Shown here: positions 30,219 to 47,264 of the stretch, piece after piece
Position numbering within the stretch: position 1 is the first letter of the stretch
Layout of the letters: the number at the start of each line of letters is the position of its first letter
Assembly (NCBI RefSeq): GCF_000009045.1
Contig: NC_000964.3
Coordinates: 620,001 to 684,000, forward strand
Length of the DNA stretch: 64,000 nt
Direction: 5' to 3'
From: Bacillus subtilis subsp. subtilis str. 168
Lineage (GTDB): Bacteria > Bacillota > Bacilli > Bacillales > Bacillaceae
The notes under the pieces: model-generated
Told to the model about the DNA's origin: nothing
The model's database searches: none
What the model saw: the letters and a program-made list of their open reading frames with translations, nothing else
Translations under genes and position numbers: made by a program

Positions 30219-31868
<1,650 letters not shown>

Positions 31869-31955
31869 TAAAGGGATATTAACCCTTATACATCAATGTT
31901 TTAACCGTCTTAAAAAACTAGACAAAGCGTGAATAAAAAAAGAGAAGGTCTTTCA

Positions 31956-33047
31956 TCAGTTTACTAAACTGTTGGGAGACCTTTTCTCCATATTAGCGGT
32001 CATATGAGCATAAATGTCCATCGTCGTATTTATGTCCGAATGACCAAATTGTTGCTGGATTTCTTTAATGCCTACTCCTGCCTCAATTAGTAAGGAGGTA
32101 TGGGTATGCCTAAAAGAGTGGGGGGTGACATTCTTTTTATCCCAGCTTTTTTGAGCAGCCGTTTAAGTCTAGTCTCAATAACCTTTCTTAATTGCGGATG
32201 ACCATCCTCCCGCTCAAAAATAAATGATGAGTCTTGATAAATCAATCTATTTTTAAGCTTAATTTCATTTTGATAAATTTTATTTTTTTTTAGTAGATTG
32301 ACATCGTTTCATCAATTCGAACGATATCAACAGATCCTGTTGTTTTAGGTGTTAGCAATTGGTATTTTTCAATTTGATTGTTAGGGGTGTATAGGGTCTT
32401 TGTGACCTGGCTTATCATTGAAATCTGTCCATTTTAAAGCAAGAAGTTCACCAATTCTTAGGTCGGTCTAGGCAAGTACGGTAAAGACCAAATGGTCCAT
32501 TTCTAGCCCGTCAGATTGAGCGAGCTTTAGAAAATGTGTCAGCACCTCTTTTTCCAATGCTTTGTTGCTTCTTGGGTAATTGAAAATCCCCAGTTGGGTT
32601 CATTTTAATAATCCCTTGAGTTTTAGCTTTTCGGAAAATCATACGGCCGCAGGCATGAATACCTCCCAAACAATTGTGACTGTATTGCTCGTTCAGTTCT
32701 AACGTGCGGTCTTCATACATTTTTTTGTGTTTTGCTAATCGGGTATTGACCCAATACTGCGATAAAATGCATCATTTTCTTTTCACTGGCCCGTACACTG
32801 CTTATTTTTACCCCACTCCGGTTGTAAATCTTAAGCCAACCTTTTGCAAATGTTTTGAAGGGCATATCTGACTCCTTAATAAAAGTCCCGTTGTCGTTTT
32901 GGAGTTCTACGTGACGGGCTGCTACTGGGGCTTCTTTCTTTGTTTTAAATCTTCCTTTGGATATTTCTAGACGTTTTTTGGTTAAAGGGTCAATGCCTAG
33001 TAGATATGATAACTCCACGTCTTACCGCATTGCTTGAGTTTTGCCAT
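31956..33047 (-). pseudogene. ydzT: tyrosine integrase with multiple frameshifts and stops
   Basis: Pieces across frames: MAKLKQCGKTWSYHIY / LGIDPLTKKR...FKTKKEA; FTVLA*TDLRIGELLALKW; LLTPKT; VTPHSFRHTHTSLLIEAG...FGHSDINTTMDIYAH. Confidence 0.9.
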
Positions 33048-33208
33048 TTATTTGTCCCTAACTAATTTTTTTTCATCAAATTGGTCTTTAAGTGAGTTTA
33101 ATAATTTTTGTTTCTCTCGACTGGTCAATAATTGCCCTTCATATTTCAAAAGATTGGATAAATTTGAGATGGAATCAATCCTGATGGATTCTAAAAGCTT
33201 TGTAAATT
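33048..33208 (-). pseudogene. C-terminal stub of a probable repressor gene abutting int
   Basis: Start-less open frame ...LSNLLKYEGQLLTSREKQKLLNSLKDQFDEKKLVRDK* whose TAA directly precedes the int ATG (TAAATG); the repressor identity is inferred from position and resemblance only. Confidence 0.4.
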
Positions 33209-33365
33209 TCTAATTTTATCCTGGCCTACTGTGCAACAGACCTTCTTAATCGAGCCTAATTTTCCATCTATTTGATTGGGGAACAAATGGCTTTTTAACA
33301 AGAAAGAAGTCCAAGAATACATTGATTGGTGGTCAATTGAGGTTAAAAGGAAAAAGAGGGCCTGA
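33184..33365 (+). pseudogene. excisionase-like HTH DNA-binding protein remnant
   Basis: LSWPTVQQTFLIEPNFPSI*LGNKWLFNKKEVQEYIDWW, with internal TGA at 33273-33275 and an upstream frameshift. Confidence 0.55.
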
Positions 33366-33431
33366 TATATCTTTCACTTTCGCCTAACTAGCAAAATTTA
33401 ATAAAACGATAAGCGATGTGAGGTGAAAATT

Positions 33432-34343
33432 ATGCTAAGTGATAATAATTTTGTTTCCGAAACACTGGAGAATGTACAGTATCTATTGCCAGGTGCAAAA
33501 GTAATCAAATTGAGGGGATACAGCAGGGCCCACAAAGTATACACCATTGCAAAATCCCCGGTAGAAAAGTGGAAGGTCGCCGCAGGTTTATCCGGATCAG
33601 AGATAGCAATTCTGATTAGAAAAGGTCATTGGATTGGTGCAAGCATTCCAGCTGGCGGAATTGTCATCGATATTGATGATTCAAAACAGGGAGAGCTAGT
33701 GAAAGGTTTACTAGATGCGCAAAACTTTCATTGTCATTGTATTAGGACCCTAATGGGTGGCAGTTTATTTTTAAGGATAACCAACATGGGGAAAAGAAAA
33801 TTAAACAAATAACCAAATTTTTTACTCAAATAGGTATCATAGTCGATGCTGGGATCGCTGGGGCAGGCTATATTGTTTTCCCAACAAGTAACACTGAGGA
33901 CGATATATAGTAACTAAGAGTCCTAATGAGTTAGATGAAATACCTAATTATCTGAGGCCTGTACGGAATTCTGTTAATGTAAAGGACAACAACACTGGTG
34001 AAAAATATGTATTCCCTGTACCAATCGACAGAGTTGGTAGCAGAAATGATACTTTAAATTTGCTACACATTTGAAAGCCTGGAAGGTGGAACCATACGAA
34101 ATTAGCAAGGCCATGGAATTGATTTATAAATACCTTCTGCTGGATAAAAAAGATTTCTCTTTGGAGGAATTTTATAAACTCACCATATATGCTATCAAAT
34201 GGAAACTGGAACAAGCTCAGTTTCCATTGTATTTAGAATCCACAAAAAAATCGCATCAAAATGTTATTCCCCAGCCGTTTAAGATAAAAGGAAATGTCTT
34301 ATATAAAACGGTAATCAAGAATAGCGGGGACTTTGAAGAATAG
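33432..34343 (+). pseudogene. ydiM: Prim-Pol/PriCT-type primase split across ydiM, an unannotated middle part and ydzU
   Basis: IVIDIDD; frameshift near 33750 gives RT(P)NGWQFIF...GAGYIVFP; GSRNDTL at 34036-34056, then FATHLKAW...EISKAMELI (ORF 34071-34343). Confidence 0.6.
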
Positions 34344-34539
34344 CTCATCATGGCGTGTAGGAGTGATTCACCCTTTTAAGAAACTGTCTAATATCGAAAG
34401 AAACAGTGTTCATTATGAACTAGCCTCAAACGATAACGGACGCGAAAAAAAGGATATAGTTCCTGCTAGTGTTATATCACCAAGCGGGAGTTGCTTTTCA
34501 TTGGCGGATAATGGGCTAGTTGAGAAGGAAGGGCAAAAA

Positions 34540-34906
34540 ATGAAGCTGACAGAGAGACAACGACGCTTTTGTGATTTCTTTACAGAAACTAGAAATACAA
34601 CAGAGGCTACGCGTCTAGCCGGAAACAAAGGGAAAAATCTCAACAGAGTAGCTTCTCAAAACTTGTCAAAACTAGACATTCAAACTATATAGAGCAAAGA
34701 AATAATCAACTAGAAGCGGAGCGCATAGCAAACATTATTGAGGTAAAAATGTTTTGGACAATTATTATACGCGATGGAATAGTTCGGTTAAAGAGCGACT
34801 AAAGGCGTCTGAGTATATTACTAAAACAAATGCGGCCTTCAAGGAATAGATTGAACATACTGGTGAAATTAAAACAGGGAATGAGGAAGAAGCTAAATTC
34901 GAATGA
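34540..34906 (+). pseudogene. ydzV: terminase small subunit remnant (3' half of ORF 34333-34692 plus downstream frames)
   Basis: MKLTERQRRFCDFF...A...ASQNLSKLDIQ / YIEQRNNQLEAERIA...EVKMFWT / KERLKASEYI...IEHTGEI; GAAGGAAGG RBS before ATG 34540. Confidence 0.75.
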
Positions 34907-35222
34907 GAGTGATCTAAGGCTTCTAGAATTGTATATGGAGGTGTGGTAACGTGAGCAAGCTTATATAGAAGGATTAAGTGATCAAGTTTAGTGTAATACT
35001 AGGAATGATAAGGTGTTCATTAACGCACATTACAACTAAAAATACCGTAAATGCCCTCAAGAGGATGATATATCCAAAGCAAAAACCTTCATTCTTTCAT
35101 GAATTTAAAGTATTATATAAGCTACTGAAAAAGTTTTGTATAAAAGGTATAATGATAAAGAACATTCGTTCTTGTATGGGGTACTTTCTCTGAGAATGAA
35201 AATAATGTCTTAGGGTGATATA

Positions 35223-36506
35223 ATGACAAATTTTATTTTAAATGAAAATAAACAGTTATCATTGGCAATTGAAGATGAGAACATAGAAAATTTTTATATA
35301 GATGGTACAGATTTAGTCCGAAAGATAATCCGTAGATCAGGTTCAGGAGTTACATCACGGGTTCCGGTCCTTAGCACCCAAGATTTAGAAAACAAGAACC
35401 TTCATGAATTATACGATGAATCTTGGCTCCGTATGAAAAACAGACCCAATACTGAGCTCACTACTGAGAGTATAAATATTGCGGATTTATTTAGTGGATG
35501 TGGAGGTCTATCCTTAGGGGTTTGGGAGGCATGCCGTGCCCTGGGGATAAATCCAAGATTTTCGTTTGCTTGTGATCTTAACGAAGCTGCCTTATCTGTG
35601 TACGAAAAAAACTTTTCTCCCGATTTTAGCTTGAATGAATCCATCGAAAAACATATTAATGGCGAGTTAGGTGCTCCATTAACTGTTGAAGAGCAAAGAA
35701 TAAAAGATAAGGTGAAAAAAATAGATTTCATTCTAGCAGGTCCTCCTTGCCAAGGGCATTCTGATCTTAATAACCATACTAGACGAAAAGACCCTAGAAA
35801 CGCTTTACTAATGAGAGTAAGTAGAGTTATAGAGTTGTTCCAACCTTCTTCAGTATTAGTGGAGAATGTACCAGGAATTATTCATGATAAATCTGGTTCT
35901 TTTAAAGAATTTAAGAATCATTTAAAGACACAAGGTTATTACTTCGATGAAATCGTACTAAATGCTGAAAAACTAGGTGTTTCACAAGCACGTCGTAGAT
36001 ATTTTATTTTTGCTTCAAAAACTCCTGTATCTTCCTTAAATCAAATAAATGAATTTTATTCAACCAATAGTAGGCCAATTAGTTGGGCAATATCAGATTT
36101 AGTAGAAAATGTAGGTGATGATATATTCAACACTGCTTCCGAGCATTCATTGGAAAACAAAAGGAGAATAGAATATCTTTTTGAAAATAACTTGTTTGAA
36201 TTACCTAATTCAGAAAGACCGGATTGTCATCGGCTAAAACCACATTCATACAAATCTGTGTATGGCAGAATGTATTGGGATAGACCTGCTCCCACTATAA
36301 CCAGAGGGTTTGGATCAACAGGTCAAGGGAGATTTGTTCATTCTTTGTTAAAGAGAACGATAACTCCCCATGAAGCAGCTAGGATTCAGTTCTTCCCGGA
36401 CTTTTTTAACTTTGGTGACCTTCGGAGGAGACAGTATCAAGACGTTATCGGTAATGCTGTGCCTTCCAAACTATCCTATTTATTAGCATTACATCAATTA
36501 AGATAA
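35223..36506 (+). CDS. ydiO: C5-cytosine DNA methyltransferase, BsuM modification subunit 1
   Basis: Motifs I FSGCGG, IV GPPCQ, VI ENV, VIII QARRR, IX-X EAARIQFFP...IGNAVP. Confidence 0.95.
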   Translation: MTNFILNENKQLSLAIEDENIENFYIDGTDLVRKIIRRSGSGVTSRVPVLSTQDLENKNLHELYDESWLRMKNRPNTELTTESINIADLFSGCGGLSLGVWEACRALGINPRFSFACDLNEAALSVYEKNFSPDFSLNESIEKHINGELGAPLTVEEQRIKDKVKKIDFILAGPPCQGHSDLNNHTRRKDPRNALLMRVSRVIELFQPSSVLVENVPGIIHDKSGSFKEFKNHLKTQGYYFDEIVLNAEKLGVSQARRRYFIFASKTPVSSLNQINEFYSTNSRPISWAISDLVENVGDDIFNTASEHSLENKRRIEYLFENNLFELPNSERPDCHRLKPHSYKSVYGRMYWDRPAPTITRGFGSTGQGRFVHSLLKRTITPHEAARIQFFPDFFNFGDLRRRQYQDVIGNAVPSKLSYLLALHQLR

Positions 36507-36512
36507 AAAGAT

Positions 36513-37697
36513 TTGAGGTTGATATCTTTGAAAGTTGTTAGTTTATTCTCCGGCATAGGCGGAATAGAGCTTGGCCTTCATCAGTCAGGACATACAACAG
36601 AAATATTTTGTGAGGTTGATCCTTTGGCAAAAGCTGTTTTATCAAAAAACTTCCCTGGCGTTAAGATAGAAGATGATATTAATGAAATTAGAGAGTTACC
36701 AAGCTGTGATTTAGTTGCGGCAGGGTTTCCATGCCAAGATTTAAGTCAAGCTGGAGGTAAAGAAGGGATTGACGGATCACGCTCCGGTTTAGTTAAGAAA
36801 CTATTTGAACTTATAGAAAAGAAAGAACATGCAAATCGCCCTCCATGGATACTAATTGAAAATGTCCCATATATGTTAAGGTTAAACCGTGGTAAAGCTA
36901 TGTCATATTTAACATCTGTCCTTTCTGAATTAGGTTATACTTGGGCATATCGAACTGTTGATGCTCGTTGTTTTGGTTTACCGCAACGAAGACATAGAGT
37001 TATTTTGTTAGCCTCTTTATTTGAAGATCCAAAAGATGTGATTTTTTCACAGGATCATTCAGAACCAGATTTAGATGGAAAGCCTTCTGTTGTGGATCAT
37101 TCCAACTATTATGGTTTTTATTGGACGGAAGGGTTAAGAGGTGTCGGCTGGGCACGTGAAGCAGTTCCACCTATAAAATGCGGATCGTCTGTAGGTATAG
37201 CCTCTCCACCTGCAGTTTGGTCTCCTTACGAGGATATAGTAGGGACCATTAATATAAGGGATGCTGAGCGCCTACAAGGATTCCCGGAAGATTGGACAAA
37301 TATCACTACTGAAACAGGTAAGGATATAAAAGAAGGTGCCAGATGGAGATTGGTGGGAAATGCTGTTTCGGTAAGGGTTTCTAAATGGATTGGTGAAAAC
37401 TTAAGTCAGCCAAAAGGGTCGATATCAGATTTTGAAGGTGAATTAGTGACCAAGACTTGGCCAAGTGCAGCATGGGGGTACGGAGATAAAAAGTATAAAG
37501 TTCCCGTATCAAAATGGGTTGCAAACACAGAACAAATAGCTATTTCAGAGTTTTTAAATCATCCATTAAAACCTTTATCTGCTAGGGCATTAAACGGTTT
37601 TTTAGGTAGAGCAGCCAGGTGTACAAATGTAAATTATTCGGATGAATTTATTAACTCGTTAGAACGTTGTAAGGATAGGCAACTTCAAAAGGTTTAA
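36513..37697 (+). CDS. ydiP: C5-cytosine DNA methyltransferase, BsuM modification subunit 2
   Basis: FSGIGG, GFPCQD, ENVP, PQRRHR and AERLQGFP...VGNAV motifs; start may be slightly downstream (MISLK or MKVVS). Confidence 0.95.
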   Translation: MRLISLKVVSLFSGIGGIELGLHQSGHTTEIFCEVDPLAKAVLSKNFPGVKIEDDINEIRELPSCDLVAAGFPCQDLSQAGGKEGIDGSRSGLVKKLFELIEKKEHANRPPWILIENVPYMLRLNRGKAMSYLTSVLSELGYTWAYRTVDARCFGLPQRRHRVILLASLFEDPKDVIFSQDHSEPDLDGKPSVVDHSNYYGFYWTEGLRGVGWAREAVPPIKCGSSVGIASPPAVWSPYEDIVGTINIRDAERLQGFPEDWTNITTETGKDIKEGARWRLVGNAVSVRVSKWIGENLSQPKGSISDFEGELVTKTWPSAAWGYGDKKYKVPVSKWVANTEQIAISEFLNHPLKPLSARALNGFLGRAARCTNVNYSDEFINSLERCKDRQLQKV

Positions 37698-37724
37698 CTT
37701 TTCACATTAAAGAGAGCATACTAA

Positions 37725-37762
37725 AAAGTATCGGAGCTGGATAAAACCAGCTCCGTTTTTTA
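37725..37762. terminator. terminator after ydiP, shared with the convergent pseudogene
   Basis: CGGAGCTGG-ataaaa-CCAGCTCCG plus T tract. Confidence 0.85.
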
Positions 37763-37792
37763 TCTTTAATTTTTTTTGCATTATTCCATCTT

Positions 37793-39310
37793 TTATTCGA
37801 CCAGTTCCATAAACTCCTTTTCAATTCTTTGGGGGTTTCGGGTCTCGGCAAGACTTTCATCTACCCTGAAGTAGAATTTGATTTTTGGTTCTGTTCCTGA
37901 AAGTCGCAGGCACATCCAGGGATCCGACTTCAAGAAAACATTTAAGAACATTTGACTGTGGAAGGCCCATGAGTTCCTCAGGGCCTTCCACAGTCTCTCG
38001 ATTCCGGTCAAGTAATCCTCAACAGTGGTAACCTTGACGGAACCAAAGCTGGCCAAATTCAGAACGGAAGGCAGCGAGGGTCTGCTGAATCAGTTCTGCC
38101 CCTTCTTTTCCCTTTAGTGTTAATGAGCGCAGGCCTTCCTGAAAGTAGCCATATTCTTCAATACTAAGGAGAGCTTCGTATAGTGAAATCCTTTTTTCTT
38201 ATAGTAAGCACATACCTCAACTGCAAGGACATCCGTCTGAACAGCATCCTTGTCTCGGACAAAGTCGCCAATCAGATAGCCATAGCTCTCTTCGTACCCA
38301 AAGAGGAAATTATGTTCTCCTGTCTTGTAGTAGCCATTAATCTTTCTGGCAATGAACTTAAATCCCGTTAATACACCGATTGTTTCGACTCTGAAAGAGG
38401 TTGCAACTTCCCTCCCAAGCTCCGAGGTAACAATCGTTTTAAGAACGATCCCATTAGATGGAAGTGTTCCTTTCTTTTTTATTTGGGTTAAGATATAGTG
38501 GAGCAGAAGTGGCTCGGTTTGATTTCCGGTTAAAACCGTATACTCACCATTTTCATTTTTAACAGCAATTCCAAGCCTGTCTGCATCGGGATCTGTTGCA
38601 ATTAAATATCGGCGTCAATTTGCTGCCTTCCCTGATGGCCAGCTCAAACGCGGCATGTTCTTCAGCATTTGGACTGGTGATAGTGGAAAACAGAGGGCAG
38701 GCTGCTCCTGTTCTTTTCCCACCGCTACATGCTTGTAGTTCATTGCCGCCAAGGCCATTGCAGTAGATTTGCTGTACCATGAAGCGGCGTAAATACAACC
38801 TTGATGTCTGTTTCATCTTAAATATTTGAGTTTTCTGAAATAGTTCAAGGTATGCCTTGTCCACCTCTGCGCTATATTTTGATCAGGCCCTTTGCTAGGA
38901 GGAAGCTGGCCGCCATCTGGCCCATAAACTTTATATCCATTGTATTCAGGCGGGTTATGGCTCGCAGTCACAACAATACCGGCAAAACCATGAAGGTGAC
39001 GTACTGCAAACTTAACACGGTTGTAGGCCTTAATGACTCGAAAACGTATGCGCTGGATGCCAGTGTCCTGGCGGCTTCCATTATAAAAGCCGCCAACCCA
39101 GCAGAAACTTTCCTTAACGTATAGATGTCATCCGGTTTGTTCCAGCTCCAATTTCCCCGCGCATGCCTCCTGTTCCATATCCCAAATTCCTTATAAAAAG
39201 CATCTTCCAGGTCTTTCTCATTCCTTCCTGATTTACCCAACCCCGATTTTAGCTCGGTGCAAGTTGACTAAACTGTAGCCATTTTTCTGTTTTGTTTTTC
39301 CAGCCTATGA
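37793..39310 (-). pseudogene. ydzW: phosphoglucomutase (PgcA-like) paralogue, heavily decayed
   Basis: Pieces: GTGGMRGEIGAGTNRM; [18 protein letters not shown] (phospho-Ser motif); [13 protein letters not shown]; TGFKFI; FGYEESYGY; RDKDA; SGTEPKIKFYF. Confidence 0.9.
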
Positions 39311-39622
39311 TTGACCTACAATAAAATAACATTATTGTTCATTATAATATAGTCTAGAGGTTTTCGAACGACGACTTTCTGACATAAATCGAGTGCTCTT
39401 GTCTGATTATGTCTAGTTATAGTTGGTTTTTTTTATTTTGTCTCTAAATTTGATGAGATCATGGTGGCGAGGAATTTCTTTTTCGACAGCCCCAATCAGT
39501 ACCAATTCGATATTTGAATTGGTCTCTCAAACAATTCCATCCTCTTTATTTATTATGATACAATTATATTAATTAGAAAATACATACATATTAGCTTGTG
39601 TGATTTTATGGGGGTAAAATCA

Positions 39623-40564
39623 ATGACTTTTATAAAAAGATTAGAGGACGCTTATGAAACTCTATTAGGGAATTACCCTGCCGGAGTATCTAGTACCAGT
39701 ACTAGTAAGTATAACGAAATACGAAAGATTGTTTCAGAAGCCTTCTTGATCGGTGAAAATGAAGTGTATGTAACGGGAACATCAAGAAGGATTAGCAATT
39801 TGGACACTCGGTTTGCTCAAGGAAATCAACGGAATAAACATACCCGGATGGCAGTTGCTTTTATTTCTATACCTTCTGTGGACGATTCGGAATTAGATGA
39901 ACTAATTATAAGAACGAGAAATAGTGCAATTACAACCTCATCTAAATTCTGTAACGGGGAAGAAAGGGGCACGATTTTTGACGGAATATTACTTTTTTTA
40001 GTATTTGAGGGTGAAACCAAAGTGTATCCGCTAGCATTCTTAGTTTTCGAGAACGATTTTGAATTAAAGGAAAAGGCTGAGGAATTGATTCCAGGAATTG
40101 AACTCAAAGAATACCCGCGAGCTAATCAATCCCCAGCCCAGGAAAATAACAAAAGCGCTAAAAATGAAGATGAGGAAAGTGCAAAGAGCTATGTAGTCTT
40201 CCTTGATATTGAGGAAGATGGTTCTATTGTGGAATTTGTAGAAGATAAAGACAAAACCTATAGAATTGGTGATATGATTTGGACGGCTTCACATACTAAT
40301 GGTTCATCAGCTATCACACGCAGACTGGAAGTAATTGAAGTCGTTGAAAATCTTGTGGTGTGTAAGATAAAACATAAATATAATGAACCTGTTGATAAGA
40401 ATTCACTGCTTAAGTTTGTAAATATTGAACAAGATTTGATTTCATTTCTAGACTTACATCCAAATGTCCAAAATGGAAGTGAGGGATTTGTATCTGGGGA
40501 CATTGTTGATGAGAACGCTACTACATCATCGGATGACTTACCGGAAGACTTTGAAAATAACTAA
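39623..40564 (+). CDS. ydiR: BsuM restriction subunit (unknown fold)
   Basis: AT-rich ORF, first gene of the ydiR-ydiS-ydjA unit; role from prior knowledge of BsuM; start codon uncertain (39596-39623). Confidence 0.8.
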   Translation: MTFIKRLEDAYETLLGNYPAGVSSTSTSKYNEIRKIVSEAFLIGENEVYVTGTSRRISNLDTRFAQGNQRNKHTRMAVAFISIPSVDDSELDELIIRTRNSAITTSSKFCNGEERGTIFDGILLFLVFEGETKVYPLAFLVFENDFELKEKAEELIPGIELKEYPRANQSPAQENNKSAKNEDEESAKSYVVFLDIEEDGSIVEFVEDKDKTYRIGDMIWTASHTNGSSAITRRLEVIEVVENLVVCKIKHKYNEPVDKNSLLKFVNIEQDLISFLDLHPNVQNGSEGFVSGDIVDENATTSSDDLPEDFENN

Positions 40565-40595
40565 GCGATAAACTTTAAATAGGGGAAATGAACTG

Positions 40596-41627
40596 ATGGA
40601 AATATCCAAACAAACTTCAGATTTATTATTGAGCCTAGAAAAGAAAAAAGGCACTTTACCAAAATTCAGCGTTTTACGCAGTATTCCTAGGAATAGGATT
40701 ATTTATGGTGCACCAGGAACAGGGAAGAGTAATTATCTAGAAAGGGAAGTGGGAAAGATCTTTGGTGATAATCCATATGTATTCACCCGAGTTACTTTTT
40801 TCCCTGGTTATACATATGGACAATTTATAGGTGCTTATAAACCGGTTCCTATATATAAAAAATTAAGCGGTGAGGAAGAGATATTTAGTTCAAACTTTAG
40901 GGATAAGATGGAAAACTTTGAGCCAATGATTGATTATCAATTTGTTCCTGGCCCATTTATCGATGTATTAATTAAAGCTCTGAAAAATAGATACACTAAT
41001 TTTATATTAATTATCGAAGAAATTAATCGTGCCAATGCAGCAAGTGTTTTTGGTGATATTTTTCAATTATTAGACAGAAATAAAAACGGTGAAAGTGATT
41101 ATCCTGTTACATTCGGGCCGGACATTATGAATTATTTAGCGAGAAACGGAATTAAAGATGAAATGATTAAGCTACCATCCAATTTCTTTATTTGGGCAAC
41201 TATGAATAATGCGGATCAGGGTGTTTTACCGCTCGATACCGCTTTTAAGAGAAGGTGGTCATTTGAATATTTAGAGTTGGAAAAGTATAGAAAGGCAGTG
41301 GACTCTTGGAAGCTGAGCCTCAGATATAAAGGTCATAATAAAGTAATTATGTGGAATGATTTCCGAGACATTATTAATAAGCGTCTTAAAGGAAAAGTAC
41401 CAGAGGATAAGCTGCTTGGACCTTTTTTCCTGAAAGAAAGTGAACTGTGGAATCAGAATGTATTTAAAAATAAACTGCTTTATTATTTGAAGGAAGATGT
41501 TTTCAAGCATAATCCAACGATTGATTTTTTAAATGCTAGTACTTTCTCTGAGCTAATTGAAAAATATGATGGCTCGGATAACATTTTTACTTTTGACATA
41601 GATGATTCGTCTTTTGTGAGTGATTAA
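40596..41627 (+). CDS. ydiS: McrB-like AAA+ GTPase, BsuM restriction subunit
   Basis: Walker A GAPGTGKS, Walker B IIEEINR, McrB signature TMNNAD, D.AFKRRW. Confidence 0.92.
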   Translation: MEISKQTSDLLLSLEKKKGTLPKFSVLRSIPRNRIIYGAPGTGKSNYLEREVGKIFGDNPYVFTRVTFFPGYTYGQFIGAYKPVPIYKKLSGEEEIFSSNFRDKMENFEPMIDYQFVPGPFIDVLIKALKNRYTNFILIIEEINRANAASVFGDIFQLLDRNKNGESDYPVTFGPDIMNYLARNGIKDEMIKLPSNFFIWATMNNADQGVLPLDTAFKRRWSFEYLELEKYRKAVDSWKLSLRYKGHNKVIMWNDFRDIINKRLKGKVPEDKLLGPFFLKESELWNQNVFKNKLLYYLKEDVFKHNPTIDFLNASTFSELIEKYDGSDNIFTFDIDDSSFVSD

Positions 41628-41629
41628 CT

Positions 41630-43027
41630 ATGGATAAGTCAAGTAAGTTCTTCTTTGAAGATCAAAAATACAATAAAGAAAGGATTGTACGTGTACTCGG
41701 TGGTAATTTAGCTTTACTCAAAAGTAAAGGTATATTATATGAAGATTCTAGTGGGGATTTAATATTTAACTATGTAGGTGTTATATCTAATGGGCGCAAT
41801 GTAATATTCATTTTGCCTAAATACTGTAACAGGCACTTAGATGAACATTCAAAGCGGACTTTGTTTAATAAGTTGCTGAAGATTTTTAAAAAATATTCAG
41901 GTTTAAATAAAAGCCGGGAATCTGATTATTTCGTATCGGAGCTAGATAGTGATGAAGTCTCCGACTTTATGATAGCAGATTATTTGCTTAATGATTTCTC
42001 ATTGAATGGGTATTATCAAAAAAAATTTACTGAATATGAAATTGATGGAGAAGGAATTATAGATTGGAGTAAGACAGTTAATGAAATTACCCCAGTATTC
42101 TCAAAGGGAGTTCCATATTATTTCAGTACTTATAATGAAGTGGTACAAAAAGACGAGTATCACTTGATAGTTAAAATTCATAAATGGGCTTTAAGTAAAT
42201 ATTTTAATGATTTCGGAGTCATTTTAGGTTTTACGGGACTAGAATTTGATAAATCCTGTGATGGTATGAAAATTTTGGACTACGCTGATTTTTTTGGCTC
42301 AGTAATAAATAAAGAAATCGTGAACACATATGTTGATCGTGACGTTAAATTGTTAAAGGCATTGAAAACCGCAATTGATAGGGAAGAGAATCAGTTTTCT
42401 AAACGACCCACTCTTTCTCTGTATGGAACAAAATACTTTCACAGAGTATGGGAGGAAGTATGTAAGACCGTATTTTCCCATGTTAATGAATACGTAAAAA
42501 AGATATCAAGGCCAAATTGGATTAACTTTACGGATATAGAGGTTAATAAAGAGAAAAAAACACTAGAACCCGATATTATTAAGGCTTTCGAATACCGTTC
42601 AAAAGAATACTTTTTAATATTAGATGCTAAATATTATAATATAAATTTTGACGGAAAAAAGCTGGAGGGGAATCCTGGGGTTGAAGATATAACTAAGCAG
42701 CTGTTATATGATAAGGCACTTGAAAAACTGTCCAGAGGTAAAACAAAACATAATGCTTTTCTGTTTCCTTCCTCTAATTCAACCAATACCTTTAAAGTAT
42801 TTGGTTCTGTTGATTTTGATTTTCTTGATATAGCCGCTGTAACTCTTGTTTATATTTCTGCTGAACAAGTTTATAACTTATATCTTGAAAATAAAACATT
42901 TTCCACTGATGACTTATTTAAATTTGTAAGTGAAATTAATAAGTCAAAAAAACGACATAGCGTTATAACTTCAACATTGTATGGTAATATGTTTTTGTTT
43001 ACAAAAAGATTAAGTGATAAAAATTAG
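41630..43027 (+). CDS. ydjA: McrC/LlaJI-like PD-(D/E)xK nuclease, BsuM restriction subunit
   Basis: IIDWSKT and FHRVWEEVC segments; catalytic EPDII...ILDAKYY...DITKQLLY. Confidence 0.88.
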   Translation: MDKSSKFFFEDQKYNKERIVRVLGGNLALLKSKGILYEDSSGDLIFNYVGVISNGRNVIFILPKYCNRHLDEHSKRTLFNKLLKIFKKYSGLNKSRESDYFVSELDSDEVSDFMIADYLLNDFSLNGYYQKKFTEYEIDGEGIIDWSKTVNEITPVFSKGVPYYFSTYNEVVQKDEYHLIVKIHKWALSKYFNDFGVILGFTGLEFDKSCDGMKILDYADFFGSVINKEIVNTYVDRDVKLLKALKTAIDREENQFSKRPTLSLYGTKYFHRVWEEVCKTVFSHVNEYVKKISRPNWINFTDIEVNKEKKTLEPDIIKAFEYRSKEYFLILDAKYYNINFDGKKLEGNPGVEDITKQLLYDKALEKLSRGKTKHNAFLFPSSNSTNTFKVFGSVDFDFLDIAAVTLVYISAEQVYNLYLENKTFSTDDLFKFVSEINKSKKRHSVITSTLYGNMFLFTKRLSDKN

Positions 43028-43183
43028 TTCTAGAAGGTTAAAAGCCGATAACATAATACTTGTCCTCGGTTTTGTCCTCCTATAGTTTTAAAAATATTTA
43101 TCAGCATTAAATGTTAAGTCTAAAAAACAGTATTTTGAGCTGGTTTTTTTAATACTATTTTCAACTGTTATTAGTCGGAATGA

Positions 43184-43201
43184 ATGGGTTGCATGATGTA
43201 A
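43184..43201 (+). repeat. degenerate att core (copy of the groEL 3' end)
   Basis: ATGGGTTGCATGATGTAA versus ATGGGTGGAATGATGTAA at 31851-31868. Confidence 0.75.
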
Positions 43202-43279
43202 AACCGACAAAAAACTCTTGATAAACAGGGGTTTGTCGGCAACGGACTTTTATTTTTGATGCCCTTTTGGCCATTTGCA

Positions 43280-43360
43280 AATTTTCAAGGCTTCTCATGA
43301 GTTCACCGAACTTGTGAGAAGCTTCTTTTTTGATGTATAAATAAACATGTGTAGTGTGTA
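43280..43360 (-). pseudogene. C-terminal tail of a second tyrosine integrase
   Basis: Reads THVYLYIKKEASHKFGELMRSL, similar to the reconstructed tail of the first integrase (AHMTANMEK..SQQFSKLMKDLL) and at a similar distance from its att. Confidence 0.5.
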
Positions 43361-43600
43361 CAAGCTTACATGGCATTTCATTTATGGACCGCTTCTCTCT
43401 CTATTGCAGACAGGATACCCTATTGGTATACTCTCATACGACACAAAAAAGACCCAGTTATCTAAATAAGTAGTGCCACCCACTCTTAGACTGTTTCCCC
43501 TAGAAAAGCACTGTCAAAGAGGAATCCTGTTAAATCTTGTGCTTCTTTGCTTTTTTAGCTAAAAGACGATGTTTTCCTTGCAATAAGGAACTCGTCTTTT

Positions 43601-43936
43601 ATGTTAAATATAAAGAGCGACAGAATAATGACATCTGATCCCCAAAAATTCACTGTCGATGGAGTTAGATTCTTCCAACAGTACCTTAATAAAATCCGTC
43701 CCGACGCTATGGAGATAGACAACCTAATTATCAACTCTGATATTATCAAGGAGGACTTAATAGTGCATGTCTCAAAAATGATAGATCGTTTGGCTTTATA
43801 TGATTTACACAGAAAAAGAAGCATAGATAAACATTTTTCTGCTGCTTTTACAGTCGATATCAATGATAGAGAGGAATTTTACAGTGCAAATATAGCTGAT
43901 GTTTCAATTGATTTGAATGAATCTAGTGGTGTTTAA
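43601..43936 (+). CDS. ydjB: hypothetical protein YdjB
   Basis: 111 aa AT-rich ORF; no recognisable motif; start uncertain. Confidence 0.55.
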   Translation: MLNIKSDRIMTSDPQKFTVDGVRFFQQYLNKIRPDAMEIDNLIINSDIIKEDLIVHVSKMIDRLALYDLHRKRSIDKHFSAAFTVDINDREEFYSANIADVSIDLNESSGV

Positions 43937-44117
43937 TTGAATCTCATATTCTTCAGAAGAACCATTCAATACTTCTTGAACAATATTTAAAGTATTCATC
44001 AGCTTCCTCTACTGAAACAATATCTTCAATGAAATCGGAAAAGTATTCTAGTTCTGTTCTTGTTGGAAGAACTATTCTTAAGTATCCTAAAGGGTCTCTT
44101 TTAAATGAATATACCAT
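43907..44117 (-). pseudogene. small acidic protein gene with a 1-base insertion (unannotated)
   Basis: ATG 44117 after AAAGGAAAG; MVYSFKRDPLGYLRIVLP...SVEEADEY, then a shift at TTTAAA, then LNIVQEVLNGSSEEYEIQLNTT. Confidence 0.4.
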
Positions 44118-44150
44118 GATAAATCAGTCTTTCCTTTCTGTTTATTCTTA

Positions 44151-44669
44151 GTTAATATTGATCGTACAATTGAGTCGACAAGACAGGCTATTGTAGATTT
44201 ACGGGCGTTCATTCACTGGATAAAAGCAAATAAAAAAGGGCCTGTTATCATAGTCGGAGTAAGCCTTGGGGGATGGGTTACTAATCTAATTGCTACCCTG
44301 GAATCGAAAATTGATGTAGTGGTATCTATCTTTTATGCCAATCGCCTTTCTTATTCGATATGGAACACGATCCCAGGTAAATACATAAGAGAAGAATTAG
44401 AACAAAATGGTGTGACCTATAATGAGTTAATAAAATATTGGGATATCACAGATCCTAGTCAAGCCTTGCCGAAAGTTAATAAAGATAACGTACTGCTGAT
44501 TTCTGCTAAACATGATCAATATATTGACTTGAAAGATGCAGATTATTTATGGGAAAGTTGGGGGAGACCTACAAGATATGTCTACAATTGTGGTCATTCC
44601 GGTATTGTTCTTTGTCGCAAAAAGCTGGCAAATGATACGCTTTCCTTTATACGAGAAAAACTGGTTTGA
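44151..44669 (+). pseudogene. ydjC: 5'-truncated alpha/beta hydrolase (ORF 44319-44669 is only its distal part)
   Basis: The frame stays open upstream of the GTG with no start codon and contains GVSLGG (Ser); downstream KHDQY (Asp) and CGHS (His). Confidence 0.7.
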
Positions 44670-44693
44670 TACATTTGTAGACTTTAATAAGAA

Positions 44694-44731
44694 ACGAAAG
44701 GCCAACTGCGACTTCAGTTGGCCTTTCCTAT
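44694..44731. terminator. bidirectional terminator ydjC/gutR
   Basis: GAAAGGCCAACTG-cgactt-CAGTTGGCCTTTC. Confidence 0.8.
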
Positions 44732-44774
44732 TTATAATAAAGAAATTGAGTGAGATTGCTGACAGAACTACGTA

Positions 44775-47264
44775 CTACTCGTTTTCTTTAGTTGCCCTTG
44801 CTAATCGTTCAACCTCTCCCCGAATCCCAATCGCAGGCTCCCACGAATCAATCAAACGAATCGCCTTCTGATTAGATTCCACCGCTTTCGTTTTCTCTCC
44901 TTTACGATACAACAGCTGCGCCATTCCGTAGTGATAGTAGATCAGTTCAACTTGATTGGCGTTATGTTTGTCATAGAGCATTTGCTCAAAGGCTTCTTCC
45001 GCTTTTTCAAACTGATCACATTTCACGTAAGCGACACCCAGATTGAAATAGGCTTCTATCGTTTTTTCGCCGCCGTATGTGGAGCTGATTTCATTTGCCG
45101 CTTCGTATAATTGAATGGCTTCTACATGATAACCTCTCGCAAAGCTTAAGTCACCGCGAACCAATAGAACTCTGTGTTGAATGGTAGGGGAAATCGGTTG
45201 ATTTTCGATTTCGTTTAAAATTGTCTCTGCTTTTTCCTGTTGCCCGTCTTTTAAAAACAGCCTTGCTTTGAGTGCATGTCCCCAAACCTTTAGATCATAG
45301 GCATCGTGAGCGTCTGATTGTTCAAGAATCTTCAGCCCGGCTTCTATTTGCTGAAGCGCTCCGTCTAAATCATTGACTTCCATCAATGCCCAGCCTGAGG
45401 TGTCGATTCGGAAGTACGCTTCTCGTGTGTGTTGGCCTAAGTGATGGGCGGCGTCGGCCGCTTTGCGTCCGTATTCGATTCGCAGGGGCAGGTTGATTCT
45501 GCTTAGAAAATGGCTAATGCGGGTGATGAGTTCGATTAGGATTTCTTTTTGTTCAGTTTCACTTGCCCATTGGATGACCTTTAAGATGTTTGGCCATTCT
45601 TGTTTCATTTGATCTAAGTTCCGTCCCAGCAGGTAGCTCCAATAGATAGAGTTGGGCTGTTCCCGCTTTAAATGGGTTTCGGCATAATCAATATAATAGT
45701 GCGCCCAGCGATTGCGGGCTTCTTTTTCATATTCGTGCTGTTCGGACAAGTGCTGTTCTCCGTAAGCGACAACGGTTTGGTGCGCTAAGTATTGTGTCCT
45801 GCCTTGGCTTCGTTCCGGCTGAATCAGCGCATATGACCGCATTTGTTCCATAGCGTAATGAAAACGGCGGGCGTCTAATCCGGCTGCTGCCGCCAGGCTT
45901 TTTTCATCAGGCGGCTTGCTGAAAAAGCAAAGCGTCTGCCAGAGCTTTCGCGTATCTTCATTGCATCTATCCCAGGTGCGGCCAAAGAGGAATTCAAACA
46001 ATTCCAGCAGTGAGTAGCCTGCTTTTCCAAGCTCATGAATCAGCTGCTGAGCGGGGATGTCATCGTCTGACATATAGGCAATGCTGAGTGCCATGGCTTT
46101 CGGGTTTCCGGCAGTCGCTGAAATGAATTCGTTTTTCAGGTCAGATGATAGATGTAACAGCTGCTCCAGCTTTTCCCGTTTACGTGGGAGGTTGCATGTT
46201 TGTAAGCAGTGATGCACTTCTTGTTGAAAAAATTCGTGGGCATCTGTTTGGTCAAGACCGCTTAGCTGAATGGCTGTCATTTCTCCGAAGCTTTCCCGAT
46301 AAGTTTGCTTTACGTTTTCCCGCGCTGTAAGGAGAACTTTTACGCCTTGCGGAAGGCTGGTGATAAATTCATGAATGTCACGTTCTGCAGTATCAATGCT
46401 GTCAACGATCAGCAGGATCGGTTTTTCTCTAGTGTAATTGGCTAACGCATTGCGGACGACAAACCGTTTTACATTGATTGATTTATCGATTTGTTCTTTG
46501 CGTCCGAGCTGATAGGCGATCGTATTTAAAAAATCGCTAAAGCTTAATCCTTTCCAATCAGCGCTGACCCAGATGATGCTGTTGAATGCCGGCCAAACTG
46601 AAGTATCGTCGACACAGGAATAGGCGGCTTCAAGAGCAATTGTGGTTTTTCCCATGCCGGCCCAGCCGGTGATTAAACAGACTGGTGATGGAGAAAGCAT
46701 CCATTGCCGTATCGCTTCCATATCAAAGCTGCGTCCGATAAAGCGTCCGGACCAGCGTGAGGGTAAATTATGCGTGATGGGCTGTTCTGTAAGCGCATTC
46801 GTTTCTTGGCCGGGTCTGTCATGAAACAGCCGTTTTACTACATTTTCAATTTCGCCTTCACTCGGAGCCCCGAATAATCCGTCTTTTCGCAGTATTTTCG
46901 CTTTTTTCAAACAGGATGCTGCCCATACAGGCAATGCGGGTTTGATGACTGGGATAGTGGTGGCTTCCAGCAAGTCGGTCAACCACTCGATATCCAAGTC
47001 GGTCTTTTCGAGAATGATCCAGATCATTCCGAACAGTTTTCCGTCGTCGATTCTTCCGGGAATGTAGTTTGCCCCCATCTGTCCGATCCAGCTTTTGATC
47101 GTGTTTGGGGAGACTCCCAGCTGGAGTGCGATTTTATCTATGTAAGACTGTCCTGTTTTTTCATTCTTTTTCCTTCTGACTTTATAATCAGGATGAAGTT
47201 TTAGCGTTTTGACGCCAGGTGCCAGCATTTGTGCAAATTGTTTTCGGTTTTCAAGTTCAGCCAT
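44775..47264 (-). CDS. gutR: glucitol operon activator: HTH + STAND/NB-ARC ATPase + TPR
   Basis: HTH IALQLGVSPNTIKSW; Walker A GWAGMGKTT; Walker B LLIVDSID; GNP motif; C-terminal TPR-like repeats; divergent from gutB. Confidence 0.93.
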   Translation of the reverse strand: MAELENRKQFAQMLAPGVKTLKLHPDYKVRRKKNEKTGQSYIDKIALQLGVSPNTIKSWIGQMGANYIPGRIDDGKLFGMIWIILEKTDLDIEWLTDLLEATTIPVIKPALPVWAASCLKKAKILRKDGLFGAPSEGEIENVVKRLFHDRPGQETNALTEQPITHNLPSRWSGRFIGRSFDMEAIRQWMLSPSPVCLITGWAGMGKTTIALEAAYSCVDDTSVWPAFNSIIWVSADWKGLSFSDFLNTIAYQLGRKEQIDKSINVKRFVVRNALANYTREKPILLIVDSIDTAERDIHEFITSLPQGVKVLLTARENVKQTYRESFGEMTAIQLSGLDQTDAHEFFQQEVHHCLQTCNLPRKREKLEQLLHLSSDLKNEFISATAGNPKAMALSIAYMSDDDIPAQQLIHELGKAGYSLLELFEFLFGRTWDRCNEDTRKLWQTLCFFSKPPDEKSLAAAAGLDARRFHYAMEQMRSYALIQPERSQGRTQYLAHQTVVAYGEQHLSEQHEYEKEARNRWAHYYIDYAETHLKREQPNSIYWSYLLGRNLDQMKQEWPNILKVIQWASETEQKEILIELITRISHFLSRINLPLRIEYGRKAADAAHHLGQHTREAYFRIDTSGWALMEVNDLDGALQQIEAGLKILEQSDAHDAYDLKVWGHALKARLFLKDGQQEKAETILNEIENQPISPTIQHRVLLVRGDLSFARGYHVEAIQLYEAANEISSTYGGEKTIEAYFNLGVAYVKCDQFEKAEEAFEQMLYDKHNANQVELIYYHYGMAQLLYRKGEKTKAVESNQKAIRLIDSWEPAIGIRGEVERLARATKENE

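Follow-up and report, generated by a model that had tools for sequence, protein, structure and literature searches.

The genome of Bacillus subtilis 168 carries behind groEL the BsuM restriction-modification island, also called 'prophage 3', which Ohshima et al. are said to have described in 2002 and whose conventional extent we take to run to ydjC. A near-copy of the groEL end lies within this extent, between ydjA and ydjC. The locus thus raises the question of where the island stops, and whether more than one element has entered the chromosome at the same site.

The genes ydiO, ydiP, ydiR, ydiS and ydjA lie in a prophage-like region (prophage 3/BsuM; Ohshima et al. 2002, cited in PMC2853133 and PMC8156514) that varies among strains. 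The bsuMA gene was found in 24 of 108 B. subtilis genomes (PMC8156514). In PMC4893254 a ydeK-ydjC deletion ends at ydjC, and no statement is made there on prophage 3. A literature search that reached few subscription papers found no paper describing the att pair or the second integrase tail of prophage 3; an earlier description is possible.

Sequences compared

The window is the whole stretch of 64,000 nt that was analysed, positions 620001-684000 of the single-contig 4,215,606-bp genome, and all coordinates below are window positions. The comparison set consisted of 48 other species-representative genomes of the genus, which together with the window genome gives 49 genomes, sampled at one genome per species. 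Window positions 43100-44770 and the groEL 3′ end served as queries against the 48 relatives. Relatives are cited by genome number (G) and loci by locus number (L).

The right end of the BsuM island

Four features define the island and its ends:

30234-31868, + strand: groEL, an ORF of 544 aa; its final 18 nt, 31851-31868, serve as attL core for the BsuM island (repeat family D1)
31869-33000, - strand: 'type b' tyrosine integrase that belongs to the BsuM island (prophage 3 proper) and has decayed, its translation interrupted by many stops and frameshifts
41630-43027: ydjA, LlaJI-type nuclease gene (Pfam scan)
43184-43201, + strand: core of the attR of the BsuM island, matching the groEL end at 16 of 18 positions, and also the core of the older element's former attL

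A preliminary description of this stretch, made from the letters alone, had noticed the copy at 43184-43201 and had proposed that it was both the right end of the BsuM element and the left end of an older one. The copy is real. It differs from the last 18 nt of groEL at two positions, and the 64-kb window contains three matches to the groEL tail with up to three mismatches, where 0.08 are expected by chance (100 shuffles). The third match (42448-42465, 15/18, three mismatches) lies inside the conserved LlaJI-type nuclease ORF ydjA; no relative breaks there, and it was taken as a chance match.

Each of the 48 relatives has the groEL 3′ end, at 84-98% identity. Comparison of the groEL-gutR interval, suggested earlier as a way to find strains in which groEL is joined to 43202 or later, identified five such genomes (G009, G015, G034, G038 and G044). 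In these BsuM-empty sites groEL runs directly into the homologue of 43202 onward, and the BLAST match of the groEL 3′ end and the match starting at 43184 share exactly 18 nt. In many relatives homology to the window begins precisely at 43184. Different islands occupy the site in two further genomes, G011 and G041 (3.9 and 15.4 kb). The far end of each is a copy of the core with 17/18 or 18/18 matches, behind which stands the arm found from 43202 onward in the window.

Because the island-free relatives break exactly at the repeat, we regard 43184-43201 as the attR, and the end of groEL as the attL, of an island of 11.3 kb. The elements of an att pair are all present: near-identical copies of the target sequence at both ends of the insert (31851-31868 and 43184-43201), an integrase gene beside one of them, and, in the five genomes named above, empty sites with the breakpoint exactly at the repeat. 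The integrase gene, on the minus strand at 31977-32997, is heavily broken. Nevertheless, about 354 of its approximately 400 residues were recognisable by tblastn with the intact integrases of relatives, so that the first integrase of the preliminary description was correctly identified. The breakpoint at 43201/43202 also supports the boundary proposed there: the island proper stops after ydjA at 43201, not at ydjC as in the conventional extent of prophage 3, and the left arm of an older element begins at 43202.

Within the island, the C-terminal 47 residues of the ORF at 34333-34692 match only the start of Pfam Terminase_2 (E = 2.3e-9). This ORF is a truncated terS (terminase small subunit).

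An integrase fossil beyond the island

Two features follow the attR core:

43202-43277, + strand: left arm of the older ('type a') phage, with an imperfect hairpin at about 43204-43239 (homology, fold energy)
43278-43355, - strand: fossil C-terminus of a tyrosine integrase, 26 codons, with the catalytic Tyr (VYL), a four-codon deletion and a lost stop (BLASTP, tblastn)

The minus-strand peptide that had been likened to the tail of the first integrase is present: the frame 43400-43161 reads ...TTHVYLYIKKEASHKFGELMRSLENLQ... The peptide aligned with residues 369-398 of the integrase of G003, 24 of 30 residues being identical across a four-codon gap (BLASTP, E = 2e-11), and was also found by tblastn. 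The homology includes the catalytic Tyr, which stands in VYLH in G003 and in VYLY in the window fossil. The ancestral stop, now a sense codon, lies about 73 nt past the core. This agrees with the 75-93 nt that separate the integrase from the groEL stop in intact relatives, and with the similar spacing of the two integrase tails claimed at the outset.

The search against integrase C-termini that had been suggested for this peptide thus succeeded with BLASTP, but its 79-aa frame gave no Pfam or PHROG match, and no complete catalytic domain (the Arg-His-Arg-His/Tyr set) scored above a family threshold. A blank Pfam scan of the tail is expected, because the PF00589 model reaches only to residue 378 of the 398-residue G003 protein and leaves the last 20 uncovered. 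With only 26 codons left, the sequence at 43278-43355 is a fragment and not a functional member of the family.

The intact counterpart is found in G003, where a 398-aa tyrosine integrase on the minus strand ends 75 nt past the groEL stop. It contains Pfam PF00589 Phage_integrase (E = 1.6e-27), arm-DNA-binding and SAM-like domains, and is located at the edge of a 43.6-kb element between two perfect 18-nt cores. The element encodes small and large terminase subunits, a repressor, an anti-repressor, an exonuclease and a DnaC-like loader; judged by these predicted genes, it is a temperate prophage. Among sequenced phages, its integrase came closest to those of Geobacillus phages phiOH2 and GBSV1 and of 'Bacillus phage 1', with 50% identical residues across 99% of the length. 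No sequenced phage integrase was 60% or more identical to it, and the likeness to these phages concerns the integrase sequence alone.

The arm at 43202-43277 is 80-91% identical to the sequence behind groEL in G003, where it lies inside the att boundaries of the prophage, and in G009, G015, G034, G038 and G044. Its hairpin has a predicted fold energy of -16.2 kcal/mol (z = -2.45).

Other relatives retain more of the integrase. At the same position G009 has residues 274-350 and 384-405 of the type-a enzyme, shorter pieces occur in G011, G015, G041 and G044, two pieces in G013, and G020 has a remnant of nearly full length. Since these longer, frameshifted pieces occupy the same position, we regard the tail in the window as the most eroded member of a fossil series of one integrase family (type a).

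The groEL 3′ end as an integration site in the genus

Behind the groEL stop the 49 genomes have at least nine unrelated types of sequence. An intact or near-intact integrase lies just past groEL in eight genomes, a remnant in about 22, and neither in 19. Every one of these integrases and remnants is encoded on the minus strand, and 61-158 nt lie between its C-terminus and the groEL stop.

Four genomes (G002, G003, G024 and G033) carry elements of 42-44 kb between perfect cores, and after each distal core there is another integrase-tail hairpin. In all, ten genomes have a second core with one more integrase tail or element arm behind it: G000, G002, G003, G006, G011, G019, G024, G031, G033 and G041. 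As tandem arrays are common at the groEL site, the term 'tandem insertion hotspot', used in the preliminary description, is apt. A hotspot of this breadth should be useful for locating defence islands and prophages throughout the genus.

A CCTTGA…TCAAGG-like palindrome stands directly behind the groEL stop, within the first 30-45 nt, in nearly all arms of the 49 genomes (L032-L079; in the window 31869-31900 and 43202-43240), whether the arm is a native terminator or came with a phage of one or another of the unrelated integrase types. In their attP arms the phages seem to mimic the stem of the native terminator, and the sequence recognised by the integrase may extend past the 18-nt block of identity.

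The ydjB-ydjC hydrolase and the right side of the variable region

The DNA from 43356 to about 44800 varies among species. In the window it contains, up to gutR, the following features:

43601-43936, + strand: ydjB, N-terminal third of a broken ABHD18-like alpha/beta-hydrolase gene (alignment with P0016)
43926-44137, - strand: 212 nt of foreign DNA in place of about 280 nt of the hydrolase gene (homologues elsewhere)
44109-44669, + strand (frame open from 44109): ydjC, C-terminal half of the same hydrolase, with a GxSxG motif (P0016; Pfam ABHD18 and Abhydrolase)
44696-44727, no strand assigned: bidirectional terminator-like hairpin between ydjC and gutR (terminator scan)
44775-47264, - strand: gutR, right limit of the variable region; synteny resumes at about 44803-44812, inside its 3′ end, in all subtilis-clade genomes

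Both halves of the broken gene are recognisable in P0016, a B. subtilis protein of 385 aa: its residues 1-108 are 83% identical to ydjB and residues 202-375 are 91% identical to the ydjC frame. Residues from about 109 to 201 are missing from the window pieces. The hydrolase is a single ORF of 335-394 aa at five loci (L008, L010, L012, L013 and L015), one in G041 and the others in four distant species.

Homologues of the 212-nt segment were found at unrelated loci in G039, G011, G015, G044, G045 and G027, and the window genome has no second copy. In G039 (L017:1350-1697) the homologue is the 5′ part of a 115-aa ORF just downstream of a protein with a PF14436 EndoU_bacteria domain, a nuclease toxin domain. 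The segment is probably a fragment of an immunity gene.

Alignment of the gutR 3′ ends gave a diffuse boundary at about 44803-44812, with neither a sharp junction nor an att-like motif. Genomes with the hydrolase next to gutR differ from those without it there in the final 3-15 codons of gutR, from which it follows that the right boundary of the variable region lies inside the gutR 3′ end. Apart from the match inside ydjA, no third att core with three or fewer mismatches was found in the window, and the right end of the older element is unmarked.

Alternative readings of the sequence past the island

The 18-nt repeat is short and imperfect, and Pfam and PHROG were silent on the peptide, so that one might see in both no more than coincidence in AT-rich, low-complexity DNA. 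Given the chance expectation of 0.08 matches, the exact breakpoint in five species and an alignment of 24/30 residues with a real integrase C-terminus (E = 2e-11), in a region most of which lies past the end of the Pfam model, we allow this practically no probability. Another reading starts from the fact that a stretch of 150 nt past groEL recurs in many species of the genus, and that its hairpin, described below, resembles a good terminator in the sense of groEL. Arm and hairpin (43202-43335) would then be the native downstream region and terminator of groESL, there would be no fossil element, and the phage integrases would have mimicked or captured host sequence; the palindrome common to native and phage arms would fit as well. 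However, in G003 the stretch lies inside a 43.6-kb prophage with perfect cores and is part of an intact integrase frame, and in relatives the homology continues into the catalytic domain (residues 274-350 in G009, nearly the full length in G020). The native sequence, moreover, can be seen elsewhere. In G020 a type-a remnant of 3.7 kb is followed by a second core (17/18) and then by a canonical terminator, the same one that stands directly past groEL in nine integrase-free genomes; G036, G007 and G017 likewise have the native, integrase-free terminators of their clades after attR. Because of these distal terminators and the att boundaries of G003, we take the arm to be phage DNA and not native groEL downstream sequence, and hold the native origin to be very improbable.

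A better case can be made for a single older element that comprised the fossil tail, ydjB and ydjC (43.2-44.7 kb) and carried the hydrolase as cargo, which is the extent given in the preliminary description. The groEL-gutR interval does vary as a whole, other DNA being present in G005, G037, G039, G043, G045, G027 and G034 and synteny returning only at about 44803-44812, and the fossil tail adjoins the hydrolase in seven species. On the other hand, the hydrolase was not found in G003, which has the intact type-a prophage, or in G002, G033 and G020, and in G024 it is on another contig. Eight more distant species have it either on a different contig or at a great distance from groEL along the chromosome, and at the two loci examined its upstream neighbour does not look like a phage gene. 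G034 and G002, moreover, have the type-a tail with different DNA downstream, and no copy of the core closes the supposed element on the right. We therefore find this reading, and with it an older element reaching to 44.7 kb, unlikely: the hydrolase as cargo of the older phage is not supported, and only 43202-43355 is demonstrably phage-derived.

Order of the insertions

The type-a fossil followed by the same hydrolase gene is found in seven species, the window genome included, and in the window the BsuM island sits between groEL and the fossil. The most parsimonious order is that the fossil is the older and that the island arrived later, into the core on the groEL side. The degree of integrase decay was considered as a clock for the order of insertion and rejected, as the groEL-proximal copy is the more eroded one in G006, G011 and G031.

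We conclude, with a probability of about 0.85, that several tyrosine-integrase families use the 3′ end of groEL, in its final 18 bp, as their attB, that a type-a element entered first and decayed, and that the BsuM island entered later at the same core. In the sequence of events that we propose, a temperate phage with a type-a integrase would have entered the 3′ end of groEL, and the prophage would have decayed to its left arm and the last 26 codons of its integrase (43202-43355). The BsuM restriction-modification element, with its type-b integrase, would then have entered the same core on the groEL side and displaced the fossil 11.3 kb downstream. The repeat at 43184-43201 is accordingly both the attR of BsuM and the core that once headed the older prophage, with the two elements in tandem. 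The preliminary description had counted at least two nested insertions; two insertions are supported, but their arrangement is one of tandem accretion and not of nesting.

Excision competence of the island is doubtful, because the attR core has two mismatches and both integrases are dead. Reconstituted attP or attB joints were not found in RNA-seq contigs.

On this reading the map of B. subtilis 168 would be redrawn, with 'prophage 3' as an 11.3-kb island (31869-43201) with defined att ends, beside it the stump of an older phage, and then a broken hydrolase gene of separate history. For strain engineering, this provides exact coordinates for a clean deletion and a candidate site for site-specific integration.

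Comparison with known systems

Tandem accretion at one att site is known from islands at tRNA and tmRNA genes and from streptococcal ICE and CIME elements. As in ICE/CIME accretion, a new element at the groEL site enters the core at the junction of the resident one, and arrays separated by cores arise in which the older members decay. Unlike in ICE/CIME and tRNA accretion, insertion is into the 3′ end of a protein-coding gene, that of a chaperonin, and what survives as a fossil is a piece of integrase coding sequence that also forms a terminator-like hairpin.

The closest known system is that of the staphylococcal islands at groEL. [quoted passage not shown] The present locus is a new Bacillus example of this already known kind of site, since the islands of staphylococci have the same 18-bp target at the end of groEL. 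The two systems have in common the attB at the groEL 3′ end and an integrase adjoining groEL (PMC8125051), whereas the genus and the integrase families differ, the Bacillus relatives are prophages of 42-44 kb and not satellites of 10-15 kb, and the older element described here, known from sequence alone, is reduced to 26 codons. The older element does not qualify as a PICI, which is a satellite of 10-15 kb that has integrase, repressor, primase or replication and packaging-interference genes but is devoid of virion genes: the intact element whose integrase matches is a prophage of 43.6 kb that encodes terminase and replication functions, and in the window no more than the integrase tail is left.

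A terminator-like hairpin in the integrase tail

Both integrase tails in the window coincide with a strong hairpin:

43288-43333, + strand (groEL sense): intrinsic-terminator-like site in the type-a integrase tail, a 17-bp hairpin (43288-43324) followed by a T-run (terminator scan)
31941-31987, + strand: hairpin encoding the tail of the first integrase (…SQQFSKLMKDLL; fold energy)

The site in the fossil has the stem-loop and T-run of a Rho-independent terminator, with 17 pairs at 43288-43324 and then CTTTTTTGAT. The hairpin is formed by the last 13 codons of the integrase tail. Its predicted energy is -22.9 kcal/mol (z = -6.0) in the groEL sense, against -16.5 kcal/mol in the sense of the integrase. 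The hairpin in the tail of the first integrase shows the same bias, with -26.5 kcal/mol (z = -5.7) on the plus strand and -19.2 kcal/mol on the minus strand, as do those of live integrases (G003, -26.2 against -13.9 kcal/mol; G017, -24.7 against -16.8 kcal/mol). Many of the pairs are G-U on the groEL-sense strand and would be A-C mismatches on the opposite one.

In an alignment of the hairpin (16 distinct sequences) pairing was kept in 97.4% of the cells, mostly through switches between G-U, A-U and G-C, and all 17 aligned sequences had the T-run on the groEL-sense strand. Covariation was modest: one pair showed a double change, shuffle controls were only marginally exceeded, and the sequences share ancestry. 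Distant genomes have homology to no more than the hairpin, ending at 43331. RNA-seq contigs break at the same place: the one up to 43330 has a depth of 127, the following one, from 43301, a depth of 26. Such a step is compatible with termination, but contigs cannot show transcript ends, and the break, which falls in a palindrome, is possibly an assembly artefact.

Integration parts groEL from its own terminator, and for this reason we infer that the element carries a groESL terminator within its integrase gene, in the form of the hairpin and T-run. The phage would supply groESL with a terminator after having cut it off from the native one. In the island-free species of the subtilis clade the fossil would be the terminator of the operon, and what passes there for the 'native' region downstream of groEL would be a fossil integrase tail.

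A wider proposal, to which we give a little under an even chance, is that the essential groESL operon of the B. subtilis clade ends at a terminator of phage origin, that every element entering at the last 18 bp of groEL writes a groEL-sense hairpin into the last 13 codons of its integrase, and that selection keeps this dual-use piece. An integrase coding sequence that doubles as the terminator of a host gene would explain why fossil tails persist and why exactly this piece of the type-a integrase survived in the window.

Fossil integrase tails of other types, each with a hairpin of its own, were seen in L080 (G003), L081 (G024) and L068:180-300 (G037). They lie past the distal core of intact prophages or, in G037, directly past groEL.
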